A DNA stretch of 14,014 nt from positions 1 through 14,014 of the forward strand of contig JBLDXI010000138.1 of assembly GCA_047495785.1 (NCBI GenBank). The letters are read 5' to 3'. Under the pieces are notes generated by a model. The model did no database searches. It saw only the letters and a list, made by a program, of their open reading frames with translations, and had not been told where the DNA came from. Origin of the DNA: Lepidodermella squamata (lineage: Eukaryota > Animalia > Gastrotricha). Positions 1 to 14,014 of this stretch are shown here, one piece after another (the stretch's first letter is position 1; the number at the start of each line of letters is the position of its first letter). A program made the position numbers and the translations under genes.

Positions 1-1108
1 CACGTCAATTTTCTCTCGCATTCCTTTCCTTATCCGCTACCTTGTTATAATAATCGGAAATTTAGTGTTCATCTTCTTCGCTTTCCTGCTAAAACCCGAT
101 GCTTTTGCTGCTTATGACATGTGTGCTGTTCAGCATAAATTCAGCCATACCAACTTTGAATCTAAAACCTATTACGCTTTATTCATATCGTTTTTCTTCG
201 CCAATTTGTTTGTCATGTGCTATCAACAGGAGAAAAATAACCGACTTGATTTCTTGCTGCGAGACGGGGCGAAAAAGAAGGAGATGGAACTGAACAAAAA
301 GCTGGCGCAAAATAGCGCTTTATTGGAGAATATCCTGCCATCTCATGTCATTGAATGGTACCTGGCTTCGGAAACTGTTACAACGGTAATAAATTTGTAA
401 TAAATTTAAAATTTTCATCAATTTTGACAGGCCTTGTACGTCCGATCCCACGAACAAGTTTGCATTTTATTCGCGAAAATCACGAACTACACTTTCGAAG
501 ACACATCTCGTGAGAGTAGGCGATTCAGCCGAGGTGATGCGAGCCCTCAACGAAATAACAGCCGCTTTCGACAACCTGATGGACCAGCACGAGTACTCCA
601 AGTACATTGAAAAAATCAAAATCAACCAGACAATGTTCATGTACGCCGCTGGCCTCGGATCAGGGGTCGATTTCGACGCAGCCGCTTTGATTCTTCTGGA
701 ATTTGCTGCTAACATGTTCGATGTCCTTCGAAAATTGAACTCTCAAATCAGCTATGATTATCAGTTACGCGTCGGGCTTCATTGCGGACCTGTTGTCGCA
801 GGAGTAATTGGGTCATCAATGTAATAAATTTTTAATTTTTTTTAATTTTTTTTTAATTTTCTATAATTTTAAGGCCTTTGTATGACATTCTCGGTGATAC
901 GGTGAATTTTGCCTCACGTTTGGAAAGTTGCGGCCAGGATGGGTTTATTTTGGTGTCAAAAGAAGTTAATCAGCACTACCTGGATTGCGGGTTGACCTTT
1001 CATCGCGAGATCAAGCCGTACATCAAAGGTGTTGGTTACCGCCGAGTTTACATCTACACGCCGGTACAAGTTATCGATTTCATGAAAGAACTTCGCGAAA
1101 TGGCTTGA
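1..1108 (+). pseudogene. Inverted partial copy of the adenylyl cyclase 3' end (end of M2 plus C2a), cut by the window edge and interrupted by a 19-bp insertion
   Basis: Reverse complement of 7395..8483. Exons <1-385, 431-820 and 874-1108. The ORF translations match the right-arm copy apart from the insertion at 501-519, which shifts the frame and is probably an artefact, so pseudogene status is uncertain. Confidence 0.7.
501..517 (+). other. Probable untrimmed PacBio barcode bc1003 (ACACATCTCGTGAGAG) plus T overhang; sequencing artefact
   Basis: Absent from the mirror copy: the right arm reads TTCGAAG^GCGATT, the left arm TTCGAAG-ACACATCTCGTGAGAGT-AG-GCGATT. The 16-mer has no homopolymer run and matches my recollection of bc1003; I could not check it against the vendor file. 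Confidence 0.85.
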
Positions 1109-1206
1109 ATTATTTTATTTCGCCTCGTGAAAATGTTATAATGATGCTTGCATATTATTGAATAATGGTCTCGTGCATTTTCGGTGATATGATTTTCAAA
1201 CGACAT

Positions 1207-1753
1207 TTATGGGTCAGTTTTCCGATTTTTCATTCCTGGAACGCCGCGCTCGTCTATTTCGTTGTATAGCCTGCAGGTAAAACAGGGCCAACAACAAGCA
1301 GCTTCAACGCCTTCGCTCCACATATTTTGCTAAGAGAATTAAATTAACAAAAATTATTCAAATCTAAATTAAATTTTACCTCGATTCCAGTGAGAGTTCG
1401 ATAACGAACATTAAGGGGCAATACCCCGCAACATGGCCCGTAACAAAAATTTTCCTTCAATTTTTGAGCTATTAAGGCGGCTGCAATAGCTGGACAAAAT
1501 GCTGTCAGAAAACCTGTCAAAAAAAAAACAAATCAATTTAGACTACCTATTTTAAATGAATAAAAATTAATTTACAAAATTGGACGTGTTTCGTGCATCC
1601 GAATAATTTGTTCGAATACTGATGACCCGGGTCTGCTTCAGAAACTAAAGCCTCAGCGTCATGTCGCTGCTCTTCTTCAGCCTGAGTTTGGTGTTCCGGC
1701 TGTGATGAGATAATTGTCACTTTGATCTCCTCGACGCCGTCCGCTTGCGACAT
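1207..1753 (-). CDS. Inverted duplicate of PLAC8-family gene B
   Basis: Reverse complement of 6750..7296, with exons 1753-1576, 1513-1380, 1329-1207. The exon-1 translation in the ORF track is identical. Confidence 0.8.
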
Positions 1754-2339
1754 GATGTTTCAAACGAATTATGAAAAATTAAAAAGTAAATTTGTCAATT
1801 TCGCGGTTTACAAAACTGGTGGCGTGGCGCGCCTCACAGCCACCAGCACTCGGCGTTTGTTGAAAAGACGGTCACGTTCGAGATGCCTGTGAATGTCGCG
1901 CAACTTGAGGAGGTCAACAACTTGCGAGGCGCAAAACGTGACGTCAATATTGCCGCGCCACGTGCGTCCATTTTTACAACGCTATGAGGCCAAATTCACA
2001 TAGCCTAAATCCTTAATTTATACCCAAATAATGAAATATATCAAACAAATAGTCGAGACAAATAGAAAAAATAGTTTACTTTTTTTTAATAAATTATAAA
2101 AATAAAGCTGAACAGCAGAGAAAATTTGCCAGCATATTGAAAATAATTCAGTATAATTATGGATGAAATAAGAATATCAAGCATGATTTTCAGAACAAGG
2201 AAATAATCATCAATTTTATGTACATCATAATATCTCGGAGTTGCTTGTCCATCATTCTCACAGGTGTTGTAACAGAGCTGCCGGTGACCGGAATTTATCA
2301 CTCATCAGTAAAAATAGTCTTATAATAAAAATTTGAAAA

Positions 2340-3133
2340 TTAATTATGGCCGCGGACTCGCATCTCGTTCAACAATCTAGCGCAAAGAAATATGGGTCAA
2401 CAATTTGTGAAATGCTAAAAATCGCTAAATTTACCTGCACATCATGCACTGAGGGCACCAACACCATAAGCAAGCTGAGAAATAATTAATTTTTAGAATA
2501 TAAAAACAGGAACCGCCTTAAAAAAAATTTACCTTCCCCACACATGCCCATCTCAATTCTGTGTAGAGTTCGGAAGCGAACCGAAACAGAAACGATGCCT
2601 GAAATTGAGATAAATTGGGTAAATTTCGTAGAATTTCCTTATATTTTACCATTTGGAAAGAAGGCTGGGTAACAGCAATTTTCGTTAAGCTTATTAGCAG
2701 CAATGCACTGAGCGACTGGAAAGCAGAAGAACACCAGGGCGCCTTAAAAAAAATGATGTGCGTATAAGATGAATGATGATTTTAAGCGGAATTTTTTCTC
2801 ACATGTTCCACAGCTGTTCATGCAATCGCAAAGGCTTATTTGCCAATTGGGGTTCTCAGGCTTTTTATCCAATGCACCGCCGCCCGTATTCACGTTGATC
2901 TGCATGGTAGGCATCGGCTGGTGGGTGACTGGGTACCCACCCATAGGTTGCTGCTGGCCATAACCAGGTCCGCCGTACTGCTGGTGACCGCCGTAACCCT
3001 GCTGCCCGCCGTACTGCTGTTGCCCGCCGTAGGGCTGTTGTCCGTAAGGTCCTACTTGCGCCATAGAGCTTCTGTTAGGGCTTCCGTATTGACTTTTGCC
3101 GTAATAGCCGCCTTGTTGTTGGCTGTTGCTCAT
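2340..3133 (-). CDS. Inverted duplicate of PLAC8-family gene A
   Basis: Reverse complement of 5371..6163, with exons 3133-2803, 2742-2650, 2598-2533, 2474-2435, 2376-2340. The only difference seen is A8 versus T7 in intron 1 (2746-2753 versus 5751-5757), which does not affect the spliced frame. Confidence 0.8.
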
Positions 3134-3805
3134 GCAATGACAAGTACTTTATATGTGCGCCTGAGAGATGAGAAGCGAGTGGCTTTTTAAAAAAAATCGA
3201 AAAAACGCGTGGGTAAATACACAGCACAGCAGCTATTGGTTGCTAGTTAACTTCGGTTTAACACAACACAAGGAAAACAGCGTGTTTTTAAATGACTAAA
3301 CATACTAATAGCTCGACGAGGACGGCTAGGGGGAGACTCCGCCTGCTGGTAGCTATAGGCAGGGTGAGAATGGGTAGATCAAGCGTGACGAAGCGAAAAC
3401 GCCGCCGCTGTTTTCTATCGATTCACCGAGGTGCAGTTGATGCGCGCAAGAAAAAAATACATCTGCTGGCGTCCTTAGCAACACATCGCGCCATAAATAT
3501 TCATACGATTATCGGTTTGCAATTGTATTTTTTATGTTTAAAAATGAGTTCGAACAGACGAAACAAAGCGAGATGATTCGTATGTCGCCTCGTGGGCGGT
3601 TCAACCCTTCTCCCTTCGAAATATTTCGTCTAGTTTTGCGGGAAAACCGGAGGCCCGCAGCAATTAAGCGATTTTAATTATTCATCTCCTTTGGCTCTTC
3701 TTGATCCAGAACAATAAAAACAAAGTTTTGATAAGCAATATTTGACTTTGACATCTGAATTAATCCTTTCTGGTTTAAGAAGCAATAAATTGAAGAATAC
3801 TTTAA

Positions 3806-4698
3806 CCCGTCAGAAAATTGTGTTTTTGCTCAGCAAAGTTTTTTTTCGTCAGAACCTATTTTATTTCTTCAGCAAAGGTATTTTCCTCCTCAGCAAGTGT
3901 TAATAATTTTAATTTATTATTTTTTCGAATTTTTGTCACGCGTGTGCTCGTTTGTGAGCGGCTAAGGCTACTGCGCCCAGATAACAGACGACTAGTTGTT
4001 GTGGATCTGAGAGTGAACTTTTCATTTTTCCAAGGTCGAAGAGTGCCGATTTTCCAAAATTATCGAAAATATGAAAAAATTCCCTCCAATTTGAGCCCTT
4101 TTCTAGAGAAAACAGGCCGAAGAGGGTTTTTGAGTTTTCATTTTGGTAGTTGTTGGAACAACCAAAACAAACAGCTGGTTACGCCACTGGGCAGAAATAG
4201 CCTTTTCGGGTTAGCAGTGGTGTGAAACCAAAAATGAAACGCCAAGTGTGATATTACAGATGCCTGAAGGGAATCAGAACAGTTTAAATTCGTGCTCCGA
4301 AATCGAGAAGGCTGACGCGTGTCACATCGTGGTCGAACTTTGCGGGCCGAAAACTGGCACTTCATGTCAAGCCGCCCCGATCAAAGTTCGCCCCGAGTCC
4401 TCAACCAGGACACACTCGCTTGCACCAGTTCTCTGAGGCGCAAAAACGCAAAGCGTTGCGCAAATTTAAGTATTTCACTTCACTCTGTCATGTGGATCTG
4501 ATTAGGCGAAAAATTTGCGATAAAATTGCTGCTAATAACTTGCTAATAAACTTGCTAAGCGCGTTGTAATGGCTCTAACTCTTTGCAACTAATAGTATAA
4601 ATTATTACTCATTAGTTGATTAACACTTGCTGAGGAGAAAAATAGCTTTGCTGAAGAAATAAAATAGATTCTGACGAAAAGAATAAATTTTCTGAGGG
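3806..4698. mobile_element. Non-autonomous piggyBac-like element (MITE), 893 bp
   Basis: TTAA at 3802-3805 and 4699-4702. Termini are CCCGTCAGAAAATT and AATTTTCTGAGGG; CCC...GGG ends with a TTAA target are piggyBac hallmarks. Imperfect terminal and subterminal inverted repeats lie at 3806-3904 and 4619-4698, built from ~20-bp units. No transposase ORF is recognisable inside. Confidence 0.8.
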
Positions 4699-5198
4699 TT
4701 AAAGTATTCTTCAATTTATTGCTTCTTAAACCAGAAAGGATTAATTCAGATGTCAAAGTCAAATATTGCTTATCAAAACTTTGTTTTTATTGTTCTGGAT
4801 CAAGAAGAGCCAAAGGAGATGAATAATTAAAATCGCTTAATTGCTGCGGGCCTCCGGTTTTCCCGCAAAACTAGACGAAATATTTCGAAGGGAGAAGGGT
4901 TGAACCGCCCACGAGGCGACATACGAATCATCTCGCTTTGTTTCGTCTGTTCGAACTCATTTTTAAACATAAAAAATACAATTGCAAACCGATAATCGTA
5001 TGAATATTTATGGCGCGATGTGTTGCTAAGGACGCCAGCAGATGTATTTTTTTCTTGCGCGCATCAACTGCACCTCGGTGAATCGATAGAAAACAGCGGC
5101 GGCGTTTTCGCTTCGTCACGCTTGATCTACCCATTCTCACCCTGCCTATAGCTACCAGCAGGCGGAGTCTCCCCCTAGCCGTCCTCGTCGAGCTATTA

Positions 5199-5343
5199 GT
5201 ATGTTTAGTCATTTAAAAACACGCTGTTTTCCTTGTGTTGTGTTAAACCGAAGTTAACTAGCAACCAATAGCTGCTGTGCTGTGTATTTACCCACGCGTT
5301 TTTTCGATTTTTTTTAAAAAGCCACTCGCTTCTCATCTCTCAG
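5199..5343 (+). other. Possible 5'UTR intron (or trans-splice acceptor) of PLAC8 gene A
   Basis: Donor-like GTATGT at 5199 and a pyrimidine-rich acceptor ttctcatctctCAG ending at 5343, 27 nt before the ATG. No in-frame upstream ATG was found. Confidence 0.35.
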
Positions 5344-5370
5344 GCGCACATATAAAGTACTTGTCATTGC

Positions 5371-6163
5371 ATGAGCAACAGCCAACAACAAGGCGGCTAT
5401 TACGGCAAAAGTCAATACGGAAGCCCTAACAGAAGCTCTATGGCGCAAGTAGGACCTTACGGACAACAGCCCTACGGCGGGCAACAGCAGTACGGCGGGC
5501 AGCAGGGTTACGGCGGTCACCAGCAGTACGGCGGACCTGGTTATGGCCAGCAGCAACCTATGGGTGGGTACCCAGTCACCCACCAGCCGATGCCTACCAT
5601 GCAGATCAACGTGAATACGGGCGGCGGTGCATTGGATAAAAAGCCTGAGAACCCCAATTGGCAAATAAGCCTTTGCGATTGCATGAACAGCTGTGGAACA
5701 TGTGAGAAAAAATTCCGCTTAAAATCATCATTCATCTTATACGCACATCATTTTTTTAAGGCGCCCTGGTGTTCTTCTGCTTTCCAGTCGCTCAGTGCAT
5801 TGCTGCTAATAAGCTTAACGAAAATTGCTGTTACCCAGCCTTCTTTCCAAATGGTAAAATATAAGGAAATTCTACGAAATTTACCCAATTTATCTCAATT
5901 TCAGGCATCGTTTCTGTTTCGGTTCGCTTCCGAACTCTACACAGAATTGAGATGGGCATGTGTGGGGAAGGTAAATTTTTTTTAAGGCGGTTCCTGTTTT
6001 TATATTCTAAAAATTAATTATTTCTCAGCTTGCTTATGGTGTTGGTGCCCTCAGTGCATGATGTGCAGGTAAATTTAGCGATTTTTAGCATTTCACAAAT
6101 TGTTGACCCATATTTCTTTGCGCTAGATTGTTGAACGAGATGCGAGTCCGCGGCCATAATTAA
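5371..6163 (+). CDS. PLAC8/cornifelin-family (DUF614) cysteine-rich protein A, about 188 aa, with a G/Q/Y-rich N-terminus
   Basis: Inferred exons 5371-5701, 5761-5853, 5905-5970, 6029-6068, 6127-6163 (GT-AG introns of 59, 51, 58, 58 bp). Spliced C-terminal part: WQISLCDCMNSCGTCALVFFCFPVAQCIAANKLNENCCYPAFFPNGIVSVSVRFRTLHRIEMGMCGEACLWCWCPQCMMCRLLNEMRVRGHN*. This fits the PLAC8 pattern W..L.DC...C....FC.P ... R.R..I ... C.PC..C....E. Confidence 0.88.
5473..5544 (+). repeat. 18-bp coding tandem repeat (YGGQQQ-like, about 4 copies)
   Basis: TACGGCGG starts at 5473, 5491, 5509 and 5527, encoding YGGQQQ YGGQQG YGGHQQ YGGPG. Mirrored at about 2960-3031. Confidence 0.85.
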
Positions 6164-6538
6164 TTTTCAAATTTTTATTATAAGACTATTTTTACTGATG
6201 AGTGATAAATTCCGGTCACCGGCAGCTCTGTTACAACACCTGTGAGAATGATGGACAAGCAACTCCGAGATATTATGATGTACATAAAATTGATGATTAT
6301 TTCCTTGTTCTGAAAATCATGCTTGATATTCTTATTTCATCCATAATTATACTGAATTATTTTCAATATGCTGGCAAATTTTCTCTGCTGTTCAGCTTTA
6401 TTTTTATAATTTATTAAAAAAAAGTAAACTATTTTTTCTATTTGTCTCGACTATTTGTTTGATATATTTCATTATTTGGGTATAAATTAAGGATTTAGGC
6501 TATGTGAATTTGGCCTCATAGCGTTGTAAAAATGGACG

Positions 6539-6564
6539 CACGTGGCGCGGCAATATTGACGTCA
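6539..6564. promoter_or_regulatory. Candidate promoter elements of PLAC8 gene B: E-box CACGTG and full CRE TGACGTCA
   Basis: CACGTG at 6539-6544 and TGACGTCA at 6557-6564 sit in a CpG-rich patch (~6530-6700) within AT-rich intergenic DNA, about 190 bp upstream of the ATG at 6750. The CRE is mirrored at 1939-1946. Motif match only. Confidence 0.5.
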
Positions 6565-6749
6565 CGTTTTGCGCCTCGCAAGTTGTTGACCTCCTCAAGT
6601 TGCGCGACATTCACAGGCATCTCGAACGTGACCGTCTTTTCAACAAACGCCGAGTGCTGGTGGCTGTGAGGCGCGCCACGCCACCAGTTTTGTAAACCGC
6701 GAAATTGACAAATTTACTTTTTAATTTTTCATAATTCGTTTGAAACATC

Positions 6750-7296
6750 ATGTCGCAAGCGGACGGCGTCGAGGAGATCAAAGTGACAATTATCTCATCA
6801 CAGCCGGAACACCAAACTCAGGCTGAAGAAGAGCAGCGACATGACGCTGAGGCTTTAGTTTCTGAAGCAGACCCGGGTCATCAGTATTCGAACAAATTAT
6901 TCGGATGCACGAAACACGTCCAATTTTGTAAATTAATTTTTATTCATTTAAAATAGGTAGTCTAAATTGATTTGTTTTTTTTTTGACAGGTTTTCTGACA
7001 GCATTTTGTCCAGCTATTGCAGCCGCCTTAATAGCTCAAAAATTGAAGGAAAATTTTTGTTACGGGCCATGTTGCGGGGTATTGCCCCTTAATGTTCGTT
7101 ATCGAACTCTCACTGGAATCGAGGTAAAATTTAATTTAGATTTGAATAATTTTTGTTAATTTAATTCTCTTAGCAAAATATGTGGAGCGAAGGCGTTGAA
7201 GCTGCTTGTTGTTGGCCCTGTTTTACCTGCAGGCTATACAACGAAATAGACGAGCGCGGCGTTCCAGGAATGAAAAATCGGAAAACTGACCCATAA
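6750..7296 (+). CDS. PLAC8/cornifelin-family cysteine-rich protein B, about 144 aa
   Basis: Inferred exons 6750-6927, 6990-7123, 7174-7296 (introns of 62 and 50 bp). Spliced: ...YSNKLFGCTKHVQFCFLTAFCPAIAAALIAQKLKENFCYGPCCGVLPLNVRYRTLTGIEQNMWSEGVEAACCWPCFTCRLYNEIDERGVPGMKNRKTDP*. It aligns with protein A (KLNENCCY/KLKENFCY, VRFRTL/VRYRTL, CRLLNE/CRLYNE). Confidence 0.88.
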
Positions 7297-7394
7297 ATGT
7301 CGTTTGAAAATCATATCACCGAAAATGCACGAGACCATTATTCAATAATATGCAAGCATCATTATAACATTTTCACGAGGCGAAATAAAATAAT

Positions 7395-10300
7395 TCAAGC
7401 CATTTCGCGAAGTTCTTTCATGAAATCGATAACTTGTACCGGCGTGTAGATGTAAACTCGGCGGTAACCAACACCTTTGATGTACGGCTTGATCTCGCGA
7501 TGAAAGGTCAACCCGCAATCCAGGTAGTGCTGATTAACTTCTTTTGACACCAAAATAAACCCATCCTGGCCGCAACTTTCCAAACGTGAGGCAAAATTCA
7601 CCGTATCACCGAGAATGTCATACAAAGGCCTTAAAATTATAGAAAATTAAAAAAAAATTAAAAAAAATTAAAAATTTATTACATTGATGACCCAATTACT
7701 CCTGCGACAACAGGTCCGCAATGAAGCCCGACGCGTAACTGATAATCATAGCTGATTTGAGAGTTCAATTTTCGAAGGACATCGAACATGTTAGCAGCAA
7801 ATTCCAGAAGAATCAAAGCGGCTGCGTCGAAATCGACCCCTGATCCGAGGCCAGCGGCGTACATGAACATTGTCTGGTTGATTTTGATTTTTTCAATGTA
7901 CTTGGAGTACTCGTGCTGGTCCATCAGGTTGTCGAAAGCGGCTGTTATTTCGTTGAGGGCTCGCATCACCTCGGCTGAATCGCCTTCGAAAGTGTAGTTC
8001 GTGATTTTCGCGAATAAAATGCAAACTTGTTCGTGGGATCGGACGTACAAGGCCTGTCAAAATTGATGAAAATTTTAAATTTATTACAAATTTATTACCG
8101 TTGTAACAGTTTCCGAAGCCAGGTACCATTCAATGACATGAGATGGCAGGATATTCTCCAATAAAGCGCTATTTTGCGCCAGCTTTTTGTTCAGTTCCAT
8201 CTCCTTCTTTTTCGCCCCGTCTCGCAGCAAGAAATCAAGTCGGTTATTTTTCTCCTGTTGATAGCACATGACAAACAAATTGGCGAAGAAAAACGATATG
8301 AATAAAGCGTAATAGGTTTTAGATTCAAAGTTGGTATGGCTGAATTTATGCTGAACAGCACACATGTCATAAGCAGCAAAAGCATCGGGTTTTAGCAGGA
8401 AAGCGAAGAAGATGAACACTAAATTTCCGATTATTATAACAAGGTAGCGGATAAGGAAAGGAATGCGAGAGAAAATTGACGTGACAAAAATCAGCAGGAC
8501 AGTCATGTCGCCGAAAAGGTAAGCATCGGCACAGTAGCCATCAGGCTCGCCACCTGGGGTCGAATTATAGCTTCGAGGCTGGCTCATCGAATCTTCGAAA
8601 TTCACGATGGGGCTATACATGTGGCGCATTGATTGACGAGCAGGCAATTGGGCTGAAAAATTGGCAAAAATTAGAGAAAAATAGTACAGCGTGTCCCATA
8701 ATAAGTTTCGCAACCATTTTGTAATTTAAAATTTTTTCAAGAAAATTAAACTAATTTTTTAAAATTAAGCCCACTGGGGGAATCTTCCATCCTCTAACCA
8801 GGATATTACCGAGGAAATGAAAAATGTACTGGAAAAAACCCAGAAAACCCCGATGGTAACTGTTTCGGTATTTTCGGTTTTTACCTGGTTGGATGAAATT
8901 TCTTCGGATTTTTTAATATTATTCACAAGAAACATGCTTGATTACCATTCCTGTGGCATTTCTAAGATTTTTCTGGCCTTGAGATATGGCTCATTTTCGA
9001 GTTACTGAACCTTTTTCTGTATATTCTCTTATTGTTTGCGTTACTTATGGGACACGCTGTAAATAAGATTTTTACTCACATTTATTGCACAATTTTTCGT
9101 CGTCGATGTAGCAAATTTCGCAGACGCTGTCGTTGAAAATTTTTCGAAGTTCAGACTCGTTCAGTGGTTTACACAGATAGAACGGCATGAACGCGTTGCA
9201 GTACAGTATTGCCATGGCTGAAACATAAGCGACGCTTCTAGCAAAATTTGACCGCAAGAAAACTCGAAGTTTAGCCATTAGCTTATTCGAAAAGCCGCAG
9301 ATTGTGAAGAAAAACACGGCGAGGCCGAGGACGAGTGTAGTGACGCTTGAAATCGCCGTAGTAACAGCCTGATTTTGACCCTGAAGACCATTCAAACGGA
9401 TTATGGCCGTTATTATCAGGAAGGTCAGGTAGGACACGACTATGGCCAGCTGGAAGGGATCGTCACGGTGTTGCTTGTAAATTCTTTCCAACCTCAAATT
9501 CTGAAAAAATCAATTTTAAACAGCTATTGCTACACCAGGAAAGATTCCCGAACCTTGAACGTCATCGAAATAGGATTCATTTCAGCCTGGATTTCTTTGA
9601 GGCGGCTCTCGTCCATGAAAACCTCTTTCAGCCGCGCATTGGTCTCTTTTTCCTTATCTTGAGGCTGAAAGATGAAAAATGAGTTATAGGATTGAAAGGT
9701 TCTCGCGAAAATGCTCACCGAAATCTGCAACTGTTGGCAGAATTTGCGTGTGTCATCGATGAAATTTCCGATCGGGTTGTCGCTTGAAGGGGTCGAGGTA
9801 ACCTGGTCACGGATGAGTTCACACGGTCCTGAGTTAGTTGGGGCCTCGATTTGGCTGGCACTCGCATGAGTCACAAACACGTTGCCCAACTTCTTCATAG
9901 CACGAGTTAGCGTCCCTGACTCATGATTCGTAGACCCTACGTTGGACGAATTACGGCTTGGGGGCGGCGAGGTGGGCCCATTCAATGTCAAGTTATTGGG
10001 TGACCTGGGTGGAATATCGATCGGGGGATTTCTCATTTCCTCAGCCATACGGCATTTAACTATGAACGAAGTAATAGATTTTCGAGTCAGCAGTTCCCTA
10101 GCCTCTCGACCTTTTTCCTGCATATTGAAGAATCGCATGACTGGTTCGACTACGAAGGACTCCTGCGGCAACTTCTGAACCGTCGCCTTGCTAGCGTGTA
10201 CGCACCCTGGGACACCCTGCGTCTCGAGAGCGTTAGCTATTTCAACATCTTCGGACCAAACGTCGAATTGCCACTTCCTTAGGCCGAGAATGCCGGCGAA

Positions 10301-12800
10301 GACGAAGCCGGAATGAATACCGATTCGCATGTTCAACTGCGGAACATTCCTCTGCACGGCGATGTGGCGAATTTCCTTCGCCAGATTCAACCCCATCCAC
10401 ACGGCATCAACCGCGCTTTGCCGGTCATTTTGATTCAGGCCAGACACGCATTTGTAACAATCGCCTATCAGTTTAGTCCTCTGGCAATGAAACCGCTCGG
10501 CAAGGTGGTCAAACTGGGAGTACAGATCGGGTTTCCACAAGCTGTGACGGAGTTAGCGTTCCGGTGAGGTTGACAAATTCGACGATATCTGCGAATAAAA
10601 TCGTAACGTCGTCGTGTTTTTGGATGTTCAACTTCAAAATTCGCCGGGAGAAGTCAGTGCATGACGGCGCCCCGTCATCTGCCATGCCAAGCATAGCAAC
10701 TGTTGGCCTTTGGTAATTAGGGTCAGTCGACTGACGCCGCCTCTTGCTTTCCCGTCTCGAAATTTGAAAATGTCTCAGCTTTTCGATCTGGCCAAGAATA
10801 TCCGGCACGAGATAGGCAGGGATAATTTTGAAAATCAGCGACTCTTTCATGCGGAGGGTTATCTGATTTTTTATGTTGGTTAGCAGTTCGGTTTCGATGT
10901 ATTGACGCGTGTTGTAGCACGTCTGGCGGTAGGTCAATTCGGTGCAAAATACCTTGAGATACACGCCGATAACATTGGCAGCCATGAACAGGAGGCAAAT
11001 TGAAATGACCTGATTTACGACACCTTCCTCGGGCTCACGGGCCTCTTCTCTTTGACCGGGAAAGTTCGCGACAGCTTCGGCTTCAATGACCTCATAAGCG
11101 TAGACAAAAACACCAATTTGGTTACCAATGCTTAAAATCGATAGGGAAATCGCGGCGACTAAGCTGGTAAGAGTCCCGACGGGGAGCATCGCATAAGCCG
11201 TGAAAATGTAGTGCAAAACCAAGGGTGCAGGGTCGAACATCGACTTGGAGAAACCGGCTTCAATCCAAGGTTCGGCCAGAATGTGGAGCCCGTAGATTAA
11301 TAGAAAGGTGATCGACATCAATCCCGACCATTTCGTGTAAATGTCTTCAATCCTAGCCCCGCATAAGAAGACAACCGCTGTGGCTAGGATGGTGCCCGAT
11401 GATAGGGCTTTTGCGATGAAGTAGTTGAACTCCTCCGTGTCTGGTAGCCCTGGATTTTTGTCGTCAAAGGAATAGTAAAAAATAGCGAGGGCAAGGCCGA
11501 TTATTTTGTAAACGGCCAAAATGGCCAACATTGATGACATGTGCGATCGAAACTGGCGCTTCGAATAGACCTGGTACATCTCCTCAATAGCCAGCTTCTT
11601 GAAAAGTTTCTGTAGGAATAAAATTATTTGTAAAATTGTTGAATAATTTTAAATAATTTTTAGCATCTCAGTATCTCTTGGAAATAATAGAGAATAGTAA
11701 AAATTGCCAAAAAAAATTTTGTTATGAAAATAAAAAATCCTCCTTAACCAAATTTTATAGCCAAACCAATGCGTAGCCTAAATTTAGAGCTTCATTGCTA
11801 AAATTTGAGGCTTCAGTCCTGAATTTCCCCAAAATATGGTTTCTCGAGTTTCTGACTCTCATTCAAACCTCAGTTTAGTATTGGGCCCACCCGAAAAAAA
11901 CCAAGGCGAAATAAAAAAATCGGAAATTTTGGGCTAGATTGCCTTTCAGTGCTGGAACCTGGAACCCCATGGGGGAAATCTTAGTGCAGTACCAAATTTC
12001 ATTTAATTAATACCTAACCATTTTATTCGCTTAATTAAGTGGGTAGGGTTAGGATAGGATTAGATGCTGGATCTTAAAATTGGGGATATGGAACTGATTG
12101 GAATAATTTGGTACAGAATTGAATGGTGTTTCGTGCTGAATTCAAAAACGATTTGAATTGGGAATTCGTAAATTTACGAATAGATTCCGGGGATAATGGG
12201 GTTTTATTTTACCTTGAGAATAGCAAGAGAGAACATGTCAACATGGTTAGCCGGTTTCGAGTCGCTAGCTTCTTCTTCATAGAACAGCCTCGAAATAAAC
12301 TGATCTTGGCGGTTGTTGCCCTTCGAACTTCGCTGGCCCCCACTACTCGTGCTTGATCGCTTTTTAGAAACAGGTTCAGCCGTAGCAGCCGGGTCTAGAC
12401 GGACCGAAGACGTACGACGACTTCTCAACTCGCCGACTGTTGTCGACCGGCGCCCCTGCTGGGTCTGGTAAAGTGGGTTGTCTAGCATCGCATCCCCACT
12501 TTCGCTAGCGCCCAGGGTCCAACCCGGTCCAGTCGCGCGGCGTTTGCTGAGATCGCGCGGTGCCTCTAGAACATTCTCGATGCTGCCTTTATCGCTGCTT
12601 TTGACGTATCCATTCAATCGTGGCAGCTTTTTGAAGCCACTGAGCGGCGTCATGGTTATAACTGCATCATTCGGCTGCGAATTCGTGCTTTCAGTCGAGC
12701 GGGGTGATACTGAGGAGCTTGAAGGTTCCTCGGAAAAGTCGAATAGAGCTGAAATATTGTCTTCGCTGGCATCATTTGTCGGAGGTGGTGGCGGTGGCAT
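7395..12800 (-). CDS. Transmembrane (12-TM) class III adenylyl cyclase, about 1390 aa, 7 exons, with an apparent frameshift at ~10529
   Basis: Inferred exons (minus strand): 12800-12213, 11609-9719, 9664-9554, 9500-9080, 8652-8099, 8053-7683, 7629-7395. All introns are GT-AG with compatible phases (603, 54, 53, 427, 45, 53 bp). There are two hydrophobic multi-helix blocks. C1a motifs: ILFADIVEF, LIGDCY (both metal-binding Asp), MRIGIHSG, KWQFDVWS. C2a motifs: LLENILPSHV, EKIK, LRVGLHCGPVVAGVIG, YDILGDTVNFASRLES. The Lys/Asp adenine-specificity residues and catalytic Asn/Arg are present. The exons sum to 4171 nt (3n+1), consistent with one frameshift. The ADCY subtype cannot be assigned by eye. 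Confidence 0.92.
8687..9059. mobile_element. Tc1/mariner-type MITE, 373 bp, in adenylyl cyclase intron 4
   Basis: TA at 8685-8686 and 9060-9061 flanks a 15-bp perfect TIR CAGCGTGTCCCATAA, which extends imperfectly to about 27-30 bp (...taagtttcgcaacca versus ...gtaacgcaaaca). Removing the element plus one TA shrinks the intron from 427 to 52 bp, the typical size in this window. Confidence 0.85.
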
Positions 12801-14014
12801 TTTCCCACTAAACTGGCACCATACTTAAATCGGGAAAATTCCGCTTTATTGTGCCTCTTGGGAATGGATTGAGAGTTATAACGCGAGCCGTGCGAAATTT
12901 GAAAAATCTTTATCGAAAATGCGTTGACATATGGCTCTGGCTTCTGAGTAATTCAGGTGCATTTAATTGATAACGAACATTAATATCAGGGTCATATGCT
13001 GTTTTTTTCACGATTTATTACCACAACCAACTCAACAAAAAATATACGAAAATTCAGACACGTTTTTGTATAAGTTAATCATCCGAAATCAAATTATCGA
13101 AGCAAATCAAACTTCGCTTTCATTAATTAAAGATAATGCTCCGCCATTTTAGATTGATTAATGCGCACTTTTTGCAGTACACATATTATTACGCTCATCA
13201 AGTGATTTCTTCCAGCACGCGACCCGAAAAGCAAAAAATCGTGATGAGTCATCTCGGCACACTAATAAAATGTTGTAGAGCGTCAGATCTATGGTATTTA
13301 TTTATCATGGTGTTGACAATTTTTCTGAAGATTTCGTCTCATTAGCCCATCGATTATCTCAGATGTCATTGCTGGGATGACATTTTCCTCTAAAAAATCT
13401 CTGAATGATGAAAACTGATAAAATTAAGGAATAAAGACTTGGCTACGAGCAGTAGCGGCAAATGAATTGGCAGCCTAGTTTTCGCTTTTGGTTTGAATTT
13501 TGGACCCTGCTTTTTTTATCACTTGAAAATGTAAAATGTATTAGCCGCATGGAACAATAATAAAATCCTCTTTTAATGAAATTATAATTGCTCGTAAAAG
13601 GAATGAATCAAGATTTTGAATCAGAATTTGGACATCCCAATGTCTTTCACCCATATCGGCGGTGGTGGAGAAAACATGGCCGAGAGATTATAAATGATCG
13701 AACACTTTACGCGTGGCTGATACCTCCGATTATATTTTTCCTTAATATTGTAAGTGAGGCAGAACCCTTTAAGGCGGAAAATAATAATATATAACGCCAT
13801 GAGTAAGGCGTAAGGTAATGTTGCGAATTGTTTACCCGCTATACATTACACCGCACCATCCCACTCGCCTTTCAATAGCTCAATAGCTGGTATGTAAGTG
13901 CCGTCTTACGGCGCTATTTTACGGCGAACAATGATTTTTCAGCTCCGCATCGCAATCCGCATACTCACCACCATAGTAGCGGCTCCCATTTTATTCGTTG
14001 TTTTCGTTTGATGT

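Follow-up and report, generated by a model that had tools for sequence, protein, structure and literature searches.

A transposon-centred palindrome on a small Lepidodermella squamata contig most likely arose as an artefact of library preparation or assembly

The palindrome and its genes

The window analysed here is the entire contig JBLDXI010000138.1 (C138; 14,014 bp) of Lepidodermella squamata, and its features are listed in Table 1. The inverted repeat described in a sequence-only reading of this contig was present as stated and spans bases 1-8483, with flank arms at 1-3805 and 4699-8483 and a transposon at the centre. Outside the element, the two arms are identical apart from 19 nt inserted at 499-517 and an extra A at 2746. 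The outer end of the left arm corresponds to position 8483, which falls within a cyclase ORF (8084-8713), and the boundary of the arm is therefore arbitrary. Inspection of the upstream side, which had been recommended in order to find either a distal junction or a contig end, revealed the contig end but no distal junction, and no telomere for the left arm was seen within C138.

Table 1. Features of the 14,014-bp window. The A and B ends are the two ends of the transposon; C33 is the 2.9-Mb contig carrying the unrearranged locus.
Feature	Position	Strand	Remarks
Left (short) arm	1-3791		Copies the authentic flank 4713-8483 in inverted orientation; stops at the contig start
Technical insertion	499-517	+	501-517 is the 16-nt barcode bcAd1003 plus a T overhang; genomic AG duplicated alongside
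Extra A in homopolymer	2746		A8 vs A7; sole other flank-arm difference
Mirrored 8-bp target-site duplication	3784-3791		AATAAATT; from comparison with C33
Mirror of the A end, extra G and microhomology	3792-3819	+	A end GAAGAATACTTTAACCC, extra G at 3809, microhomology TCAGAAAATT at 3810-3819; C33 and right junction compared
Non-autonomous DNA transposon	3808-4712	-	941 bp in C33; authentic copy minus the last 36 nt of the B end
Partner of the 10-nt inverted microhomology	4686-4695	+	AATTTTCTGA, beside the true A end
Authentic 8-bp target-site duplication	4713-4720		AATTTATT on the window strand, AATAAATT in the C33 orientation
Authentic locus	4713-14014		Same as C33:1414015-1423316, reverse complement; long palindrome arm at 4713-8483
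Two candidate small cysteine-rich genes	5371-7159	+	Exons include 5371-5712, 6750-6956 and 6983-7159
Membrane adenylate/guanylate cyclase exons	7395-11579	-	PF00211, E = 1e-34, 3e-21 and 2e-8

The cyclase predicted earlier was borne out by its matches to PF00211. Of its catalytic domains, the first is encoded at 9530-11579 and the second by the two segments 7679-8050 and 7395-7625. The left arm mirrors only the 3' part of the gene (positions below 8483). The candidate cysteine-rich genes are also mirrored there. These had been read as two PLAC8 genes and presumably resemble the PLAC8 N-terminal motif. However, no PLAC8 match was obtained with Pfam, whether single exons or all six frames of the whole genome were searched, and a search of the protein atlas placed a PLAC8 cluster at rank 3 (score 0.78), which is a weak lead, leaving the PLAC8 assignment unconfirmed.

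The locus on C33 and its transposon

Bases 3808-14014 of C138 were 100.000% identical to C33 over 6176 + 3985 nt (10,161 nt compared), a single 46-nt stretch at window positions 9984-10029 having been excluded from the comparison. The flank occurs just three times in the whole assembly, twice on C138 and once on C33. The left arm is 98.9% identical to C33, with the shortfall arising solely from the insertion at 499-517 and the repeats of the element end. In C33, the element is 36 nt longer, after which a different far flank begins, and the 8-bp duplication AATAAATT is perfect on both sides. As there are two different flanks and an 8-bp target duplication, the C33 copy is an ordinary insertion. 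An empty-site allele of this insertion was not found in the assembly. Judged by the identity with C33, the palindrome appears to derive from the same haplotype sequence as this ordinary locus.

The element carries subterminal inverted repeats of ~85 nt (3819-3904 and 4619-4696), which are ~90% identical with indels, and its core includes a fragment (~3990-4195) of an abundant ~295-bp MITE. No Pfam match was found in its ORFs and no structured RNA or tRNA was found in the element. Other copies of the element among the scored genome matches were all non-coding, and none of these copies lies at a palindrome centre, a question raised with the earlier proposal of transposon-directed amplification.

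That proposal took the element to be piggyBac-like, with the TTAA at 3802-3805 as its target site. The resemblance to piggyBac and other TTAA-specific transposons lies in a TTAA that adjoins CCC at one conserved end, the A end. In 6/6 copies with unrelated flanks, conservation at this end continues for 10-14 nt past the TTAA (GAAGAATAC TTTAA CCC), which is internal to the conserved element end and not a target duplication, and the opposite end reads ...CCTTTTT CCC at the equivalent position. Perfect 8-bp target duplications flank 3/3 full copies, namely AATAAATT in C33, AATATTAT in C10 and AAATATCA in C29. Membership of the piggyBac superfamily, for which a TTAA target duplication at both termini and a piggyBac transposase (DDE_Tnp_1_7), either encoded or demonstrably acting on the element, are expected, was therefore rejected: the ends are 14-17 nt longer, the duplication measures 8 bp, and the element codes for no transposase.

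The AT-rich 8-bp duplication in 3/3 full copies is a feature shared with hAT-like non-autonomous elements and MITEs, as are the size (~0.9-1.6 kb), the non-coding content and the inverted repeated subterminal motifs (TCAGCAAA-like). In contrast to hAT elements, the outer 8-9 nt of the termini (GAAGAATAC... and GGACCTACC...) are not inverted repeats, the inverted similarity of the ends starting only at CTTT..CCCTCAG, and the usual hAT terminal motif is lacking. Hence, the element is a candidate hAT-like transposon by its 8-bp target duplication, with ends that depart from the hAT terminal repeats.

The junction and the arm differences

The junction strings quoted in the sequence-only reading, ...GAAGAATACTTTAA CCCG... 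and ...GGG TTAA AGTATTCTTC, were located at 3792-3809 and 4696-4712, respectively. However, the identity of the arms does not halt exactly at the transposon termini, as had been claimed. The real element end is at 4712, 14 nt farther out, and the identity enters the element by ~27 nt with a 1-nt indel (G3809), persisting up to the 10-nt microhomology at 3810-3819 and 4686-4695. Sequence colinear with C33 stops at 3808 and is followed by the reverse complement of the same flank, ~880 nt away, the breakpoint zone being 3808-3819. The apparent left terminus in C138 is thus the mirrored right end and not the true far end of the element. The 36 nt of the far end present in C33 are absent from the window, and the spacer is not exactly one element. 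The join sits in the inverted microhomology TCAGAAAATT/AATTTTCTGA, with a 1-nt bulge formed by one extra base, and this microhomology closes the ~85-bp snap-back stem of the element. When window positions 3808-4730 (minus strand) were folded as DNA, the 3' end was predicted to pair at exactly the join site, at the base of the long snap-back stem (dG -166.6 kcal/mol, z = -10.3).

These findings bear on the suggestion that aberrant piggyBac transposition or sister-chromatid repair produced a germline palindromic amplification, in which one flank was joined to both ends of the element, the genes were doubled and the element was retained as a stabilising spacer. Only the TTAA beside CCC.../...GGG at both junctions speaks for this. 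The TTAA-overhang argument falls with the piggyBac assignment, given the internal TTAA in 6/6 copies, the TTTTT at the other end and the 8-bp duplications of 3/3 full copies. Moreover, in place of the genuine far end the left junction has the near end in mirror image, attached through a microhomology, which is not the product expected if one flank had been joined to both ends. An amplification in the germline would be expected to lie within the main chromosome sequence and to have a definite outer limit; the palindrome is confined to a barcode-bearing orphan contig of 14 kb, and the same 10.2 kb occurs on C33 as an ordinary insertion with two flanks on identical sequence. As the arm differences are also technical (see below), this explanation is rejected as extremely unlikely.

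Both differences between the flank arms have a technical origin. The 499-517 insertion, found neither in the right arm nor in C33, includes the tail of a PacBio barcoded adapter with the barcode bcAd1003, the sequence of which is given in 10.1101/2023.02.19.526140. The barcode 17-mer was found 120 times in forward and once in reverse orientation in the genome (control 0), including one occurrence in the window. This 120:1 strand bias indicates that the barcode arises from the read layout, and the 499-517 insertion marks a read start in the contig layout. The near-identity of the arms had been taken to imply gene conversion or a very recent origin. Since the differences amount to a barcode and a homopolymer length, neither gene conversion nor an ancient palindrome is needed to account for the similarity. 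The barcode at 501-517 further indicates that a second read begins within the left arm, and hence at least two reads may carry the junction.

We therefore regard it as likely that C138 represents a single fold-back (snap-back) chimera, or a few such DNA molecules, formed from the ordinary C33 locus. Rather than a gene amplification, the palindrome would most likely be an artefact of the sequencing library or of the assembly. A strand would traverse the flank into the 941-bp transposon and stop 36 nt before its far end. Its 3' end (...AATTTTCTGACG) would then fold back via the ~85-bp subterminal inverted repeats, pair with TCAGAAAATT beside the near end and be extended along its own flank, giving a product that consists of flank, truncated element and inverted flank. 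The chimeric molecule would have been sequenced by PacBio HiFi and kept as a read-length orphan contig. C138 is thus probably a template-switch or snap-back chimera. The copying would most likely have occurred in vitro, either by a polymerase that switched templates while the DNA was being amplified or by fill-in of a snapped-back strand while the library was being prepared. No transposase would be involved, and the palindrome would not be a feature of the germline genome. We infer that read support for the C138 junction is low. The possible presence of the junction in at least two reads counts against a one-off event in vitro, as this is unexpected for a single-molecule artefact; shared junction reads are expected from re-amplified chimeras or from structure-driven snap-back. 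The sequence-only reading had included, as one option, the folding back of terminal inverted repeats to prime copying of the flank. The geometry of that option fits; the amplification attached to it is unsupported, and its caveat that the same could happen in vitro is the reading favoured here.

A mis-join made purely by the assembler through the inverted repeats of the element, with no molecule having the structure, would be consistent with the layout artefacts in the contig (barcode and homopolymer). However, repeats of ~85 nt with ~90% identity and indels are far too little for a HiFi overlap, and the junction 26-mer (3797-3822) is unique in the genome, which requires that at least one read spans it. 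This makes an assembler mis-join very unlikely.

Fold-backs on other small contigs

The sample comprised eleven small contigs, of which in most cases the first 10 kb were analysed, with 20 kb of C33 for comparison. Fold-backs were found in 4 of the 11, C138 included, and in none of the 20 kb of C33. The arms are located at 1-3325 and 3671-6995 in C139, where 10 of 11 arm differences constitute a barcode, at 1-6949 and 7698-14646 in C145, and at 75-6617 and 6883-13476 in C147. The counterparts of C145 and C147 on the main contigs C54 and C55 match one arm, the spacer and a further 14-15 nt at 100% and then diverge, and both contigs join at microhomologies of 14-15 nt. In addition, C147 starts with 81 nt of a third contig, joined with a 7-nt overlap, which is a second chimeric junction within 13.5 kb.

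Similar molecules are known from amplified DNA. In MDA, >85% of chimeras are inverted joins, most of them intramolecular, and >70% are primed at 2-21 complementary nt (PMC1855051), and 12-50% of PacBio reads obtained after whole-genome amplification carry palindromes (10.1101/173872). The C138 structure resembles the MDA inverted chimeras of Lasken & Stockwell (2007) and the Pacasus reads in having an inverted join within one molecule, made to the opposite strand close by, short complementary priming (10 nt in C138 and 7-15 nt in the sister contigs, against the reported 2-21), identical arms and a normal locus that is also present, with many loci affected in one library. Four features expected of an MDA-type chimera were observed, namely the inverted join to a nearby position of one locus, the short complementary sequence at the junction, the unrearranged locus on identical sequence and the recurrence at unrelated loci, which rests on C139, C145 and C147, the last with its further inter-contig junction. 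Unlike in those precedents from amplified DNA, the C138 microhomology lies at the base of a transposon snap-back stem, which suggests that the site was dictated by structure and not random, and the product reached the final assembly as a separate contig.

A genuine cellular event was weighed as an alternative. Living cells generate the same signature, with a short inverted repeat, a loop and identical arms, at hairpin-capped breaks and in fold-back inversions, and the palindromic rDNA of Tetrahymena likewise has a central short inverted repeat, a non-palindromic loop and identical arms. A rare fold-back inversion in vivo, either somatic or in a few individuals of a pooled sample, could arise if the inverted repeats extruded a hairpin or cruciform, or if a resected break snapped back, and the hairpin-capped end were replicated to a palindrome. 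The geometry, with an ~85-bp imperfect stem and the join at its base, is equally fitting, the arms are identical to C33, and the barcode at 501-517 implies that the junction may be common to two reads. However, C138 has neither the distal end nor the telomere of such structures, and the main assembly holds the unrearranged locus. The same type of structure recurs at unrelated loci, on 4 or more of the 11 tiny orphan contigs, while the main assembly shows each of these loci in its ordinary form, and the second junction of C147 resembles a library-wide process. Otherwise a single sample of a healthy animal would have to contain many independent, unstable chromosome rearrangements that are frequent enough to be detected, and an event in vivo is accordingly judged unlikely. 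Less probable still is the broader proposition that the fold-backs are real and that, in this animal, small-transposon and other short inverted repeats often turn breaks into hairpin-capped ends and then into palindromic duplications. If true, the C138 junction would show palindrome formation driven by a MITE, caught in nature at a gene-bearing locus, and HiFi reads would capture such events in vivo at many loci, somatic or germline. Transposon-repeat-driven palindrome formation would then be visible in an animal at single-molecule resolution, and nothing here favours this.

The C138 palindrome is most likely not a real genomic feature, and the main value of these findings is in quality control. 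The assembly includes read-length orphan contigs that are fold-back chimeras, together with at least 121 leftover PacBio barcode 17-mers, and such artefacts can be mistaken for palindromic amplifications, inverted duplications, frameshifts or insertions. A missed SMRTbell adapter at the centre was also considered as a source of the fold-backs and rejected, as adapter 12-mers were absent from C138, C139, C145 and C147 and the centres consist of genomic loops of 265-870 nt.

The inverted repeat and its ordinary counterpart on C33

Self-comparison of the window placed a large inverted repeat at bases 1-8483, as the sequence-only reading had claimed, and the junction strings quoted there were found at positions 3792-3809 and 4696-4712. 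When the left arm was globally aligned with the reverse-complemented right arm, just two differences lay outside the element (see table), and the palindrome is thus real in the window sequence and far beyond chance. The window is the complete contig C138 (14,014 bp) of an assembly of 121 Mb in 151 contigs, and the left arm stops where the contig begins, so that a check upstream for a distal junction or a contig end found the latter. Position 8483, matching the outer end of the left arm, falls within the cyclase ORF at 8084-8713, so the palindrome has an arbitrary outer limit.

The single further copy of the flank in the assembly is on C33, a contig of 2.9 Mb, where C33:1414015-1424221 (reverse complement) matches window 3808-14014 at 100.000% identity over all but 46 nt of this range. 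Past this match, C33 runs without a fold-back through 36 more bases of the element and then into unrelated flank. As an 8-bp duplication is present at both sides of the element, C33 carries an ordinary insertion.

Both arm differences are technical. The insertion in the left arm includes the 17-mer ACACATCTCGTGAGAGT (window 501-517), which is the 16-nt barcode of PacBio adapter bcAd1003 with a T overhang (10.1101/2023.02.19.526140). The 17-mer was found in the contigs 120 times forward and once reverse (with two mismatches), and the reversed control 0 times; it is not a biological repeat, as such a repeat would not track contig orientation. We infer that the barcode marks a HiFi read start, retained when a contig is written from read prefixes. 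The second difference is a change in homopolymer length, the usual type of HiFi error. With both differences set aside, the two arms and C33 are in effect the same sequence, and gene conversion, proposed as an alternative to a very recent origin to account for the near-identity of the arms, is not needed.

Remnants of this barcode were left at ~121 assembly sites, nearly all on the forward strand and many on small contigs or close to contig starts. They take the form of a 17-19-nt insertion, as in C138, or overwrite genomic bases, as in C139. In any result drawn from this genome, such remnants can pass for frameshifts, insertions or divergence between arms.

Coordinates of features in the window (C138) and in other contigs of the assembly
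Feature	Location	Detail
Arm difference 1	window 499-517	19-nt insertion, left arm
Arm difference 2	window 2746	one extra A, left arm
Element copy	window 3808-4712	
Element copy	C33:1423317-1424257	
Element copy	L008 (C10)	
Element copy	L012 (C29)	
Further ORF beyond palindrome	window 12204-12800	minus strand
Further ORF beyond palindrome	window 9072-9497	minus strand
Fold-back contig C139 (L039)	arms 1-3325 and 3671-6995	13,879 bp
Fold-back contig C145 (L047+L050)	arms 1-6949 and 7698-14646	19,968 bp
Fold-back contig C147 (L048+L049)	arms 75-6617 and 6883-13476	13,517 bp
Barcode sites (examples)	C1:2059197, C9:36911, C17:3907723, C139:118, C143:8645	

The transposon at the centre

The terminal motif was located in other genomic copies of the element and the flanks were compared. 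Six copies whose flanks are unrelated share conserved sequence that extends 14 nt beyond the supposed terminus (GAAGAATAC TTTAA CCCTCAG...), and in three copies the opposite end is ...CCCTCAG-like with TGGACCTACCTTTTT before it. Each of the three full-length copies (941, 975 and 1596 bp) lies between perfect 8-bp duplications, namely AATAAATT in C33 and AATATTAT and AAATATCA in the other two. Hence, the TTAA belongs to the element and not to the target site, which refutes the assignment as piggyBac-like. The family consists of non-autonomous DNA transposons, 941-1596 bp long, whose perfect 8-bp target duplications are AT-rich. In the length of these duplications it resembles hAT elements, but the outermost 8-9 nt do not form inverted repeats, and the ends are asymmetric (GAAGAATAC... 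versus ...GGTAGGTCC). The subterminal inverted repeats (~85 bp) are rich in TCAGCAAA-like motifs.

A Pfam search of the element's ORFs identified no recognisable coding, and Rfam and tRNA searches found no Rfam family or tRNA inside it. The core (window ~3990-4195) includes part of an abundant ~295-bp MITE, which is present at locus L022 (1310-1605) and at 40 or more further loci. This MITE looks hAT-like, with terminal inverted repeats of the CAGGGGCGTAACCAG type (CAGGGG...) and a target duplication of 8 bp (AGGTAAAC at L022). When the other genomic copies of the element were checked, none sat at a palindrome centre.

Left junction and origin of the fold-back

The far end of the element in C33 and the left and right junctions of the window were compared. 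Colinearity with C33 stops at 3808, and the breakpoint therefore falls inside a 12-nt inverted microhomology zone, 36 nt short of the real far end. What had been read as a genuine left terminus mirrors the true near end (3792-3808). Next come an extra G (3809) and the 10-nt TCAGAAAATT (3810-3819), whose complement, AATTTTCTGA, lies at 4686-4695. The junction 26-mer occurs nowhere else in the assembly, so at least one real molecule must have carried it, which counts against a pure mis-join in the assembly graph.

When window 3808-4730 (minus strand) was folded as single-stranded DNA, the predicted fold (dG -166.6 kcal/mol, z = -10.3) had a long snap-back stem built by the subterminal inverted repeats, at the base of which the 3' end of the strand pairs with exactly the 4686-4695 site, while the upstream flank remains as a 5' template. 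Extending this folded 3' end recreates the observed sequence with one base bulged.

Fold-backs with a short arm reaching the contig start were found in four of 11 small contigs sampled, most over the first 10 kb only (C138, C139, C145 and C147); the 20 kb of C33 examined held no comparable fold-back. C139, C145 and C147 are near-perfect palindromes on read-length orphan contigs with loops of 265-748 nt, and 10 of the 11 arm mismatches in C139 are barcode, at 118-134. The main contigs C54 (for C145) and C55 (for C147) carry the ordinary arrangement. Their 100% match covers one arm and the spacer and reaches 14-15 nt into the opposite arm, after which the sequences diverge, and the joins in C145 and C147 lie at this 14-15-nt inverted microhomology. 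Both are the same kind of microhomology fold-back as C138. The start of C147 is a second chimeric junction inside one 13.5-kb contig: its first 81 nt (L048:1-81) are 99% identical to C29:790357-790437 and meet the arm derived from C55 in a 7-nt overlap, and its opposite end is colinear with C55. One C147 arm has a 50-nt indel (13251-13300). A SMRTbell adapter at the centre was ruled out, as the fold-back contigs contain no adapter words.

Five traits make up the signature: the join is inverted and intramolecular, it coincides with a short complementary stretch, the loop measures a few hundred bases, the normal locus is present on identical sequence, and many loci in one library are affected. 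This signature matches the chimeras of strand-displacement amplification, of which >85% are inverted, with intramolecular events favoured and >70% priming at 2-21 complementary nt (PMC1855051), and the palindromic PacBio reads produced after whole-genome amplification (10.1101/173872). Given this match, a technical fold-back chimera is the probable origin. A single strand would fold at the subterminal inverted repeats, and its 3' end would prime on the 10-nt microhomology and copy its own flank. Snap-back of single-stranded fragments with fill-in during end repair would yield the same product. The barcode means that a second read starts within the short arm, and the junction may therefore be common to two reads, which counts against a technical chimera formed as a one-off accident in a single molecule. 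A genuine low-frequency fold-back in vivo, for example from a hairpin-capped break at the transposon inverted repeats, would leave a sequence identical to that of the technical chimera, and is considered unlikely. Germline amplification made by a transposase, as in the aberrant transposition that the sequence-only reading offered as one of two routes, is effectively excluded.

Genes in the window

The cyclase named earlier was confirmed as a minus-strand gene for a membrane adenylate/guanylate cyclase (PF00211), with just its 3' part in the arms. For the two claimed PLAC8 genes, PLAC8 was confirmed neither by Pfam searches of single exons nor by a genome-wide six-frame PF04749 search; the protein atlas gave a weak PLAC8 lead for the candidate small cysteine-rich genes. 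An 18-nt periodic repeat (window 5460-5531, mirror 2970-3059) encoding Q/G/Y-rich, QQYGG-like hexapeptide units sits at the N-terminus of the first of these. One of the two ORFs beyond the palindrome has no Pfam match, and the other has a sub-threshold MARVEL-like match that probably belongs to the membrane region of the cyclase.
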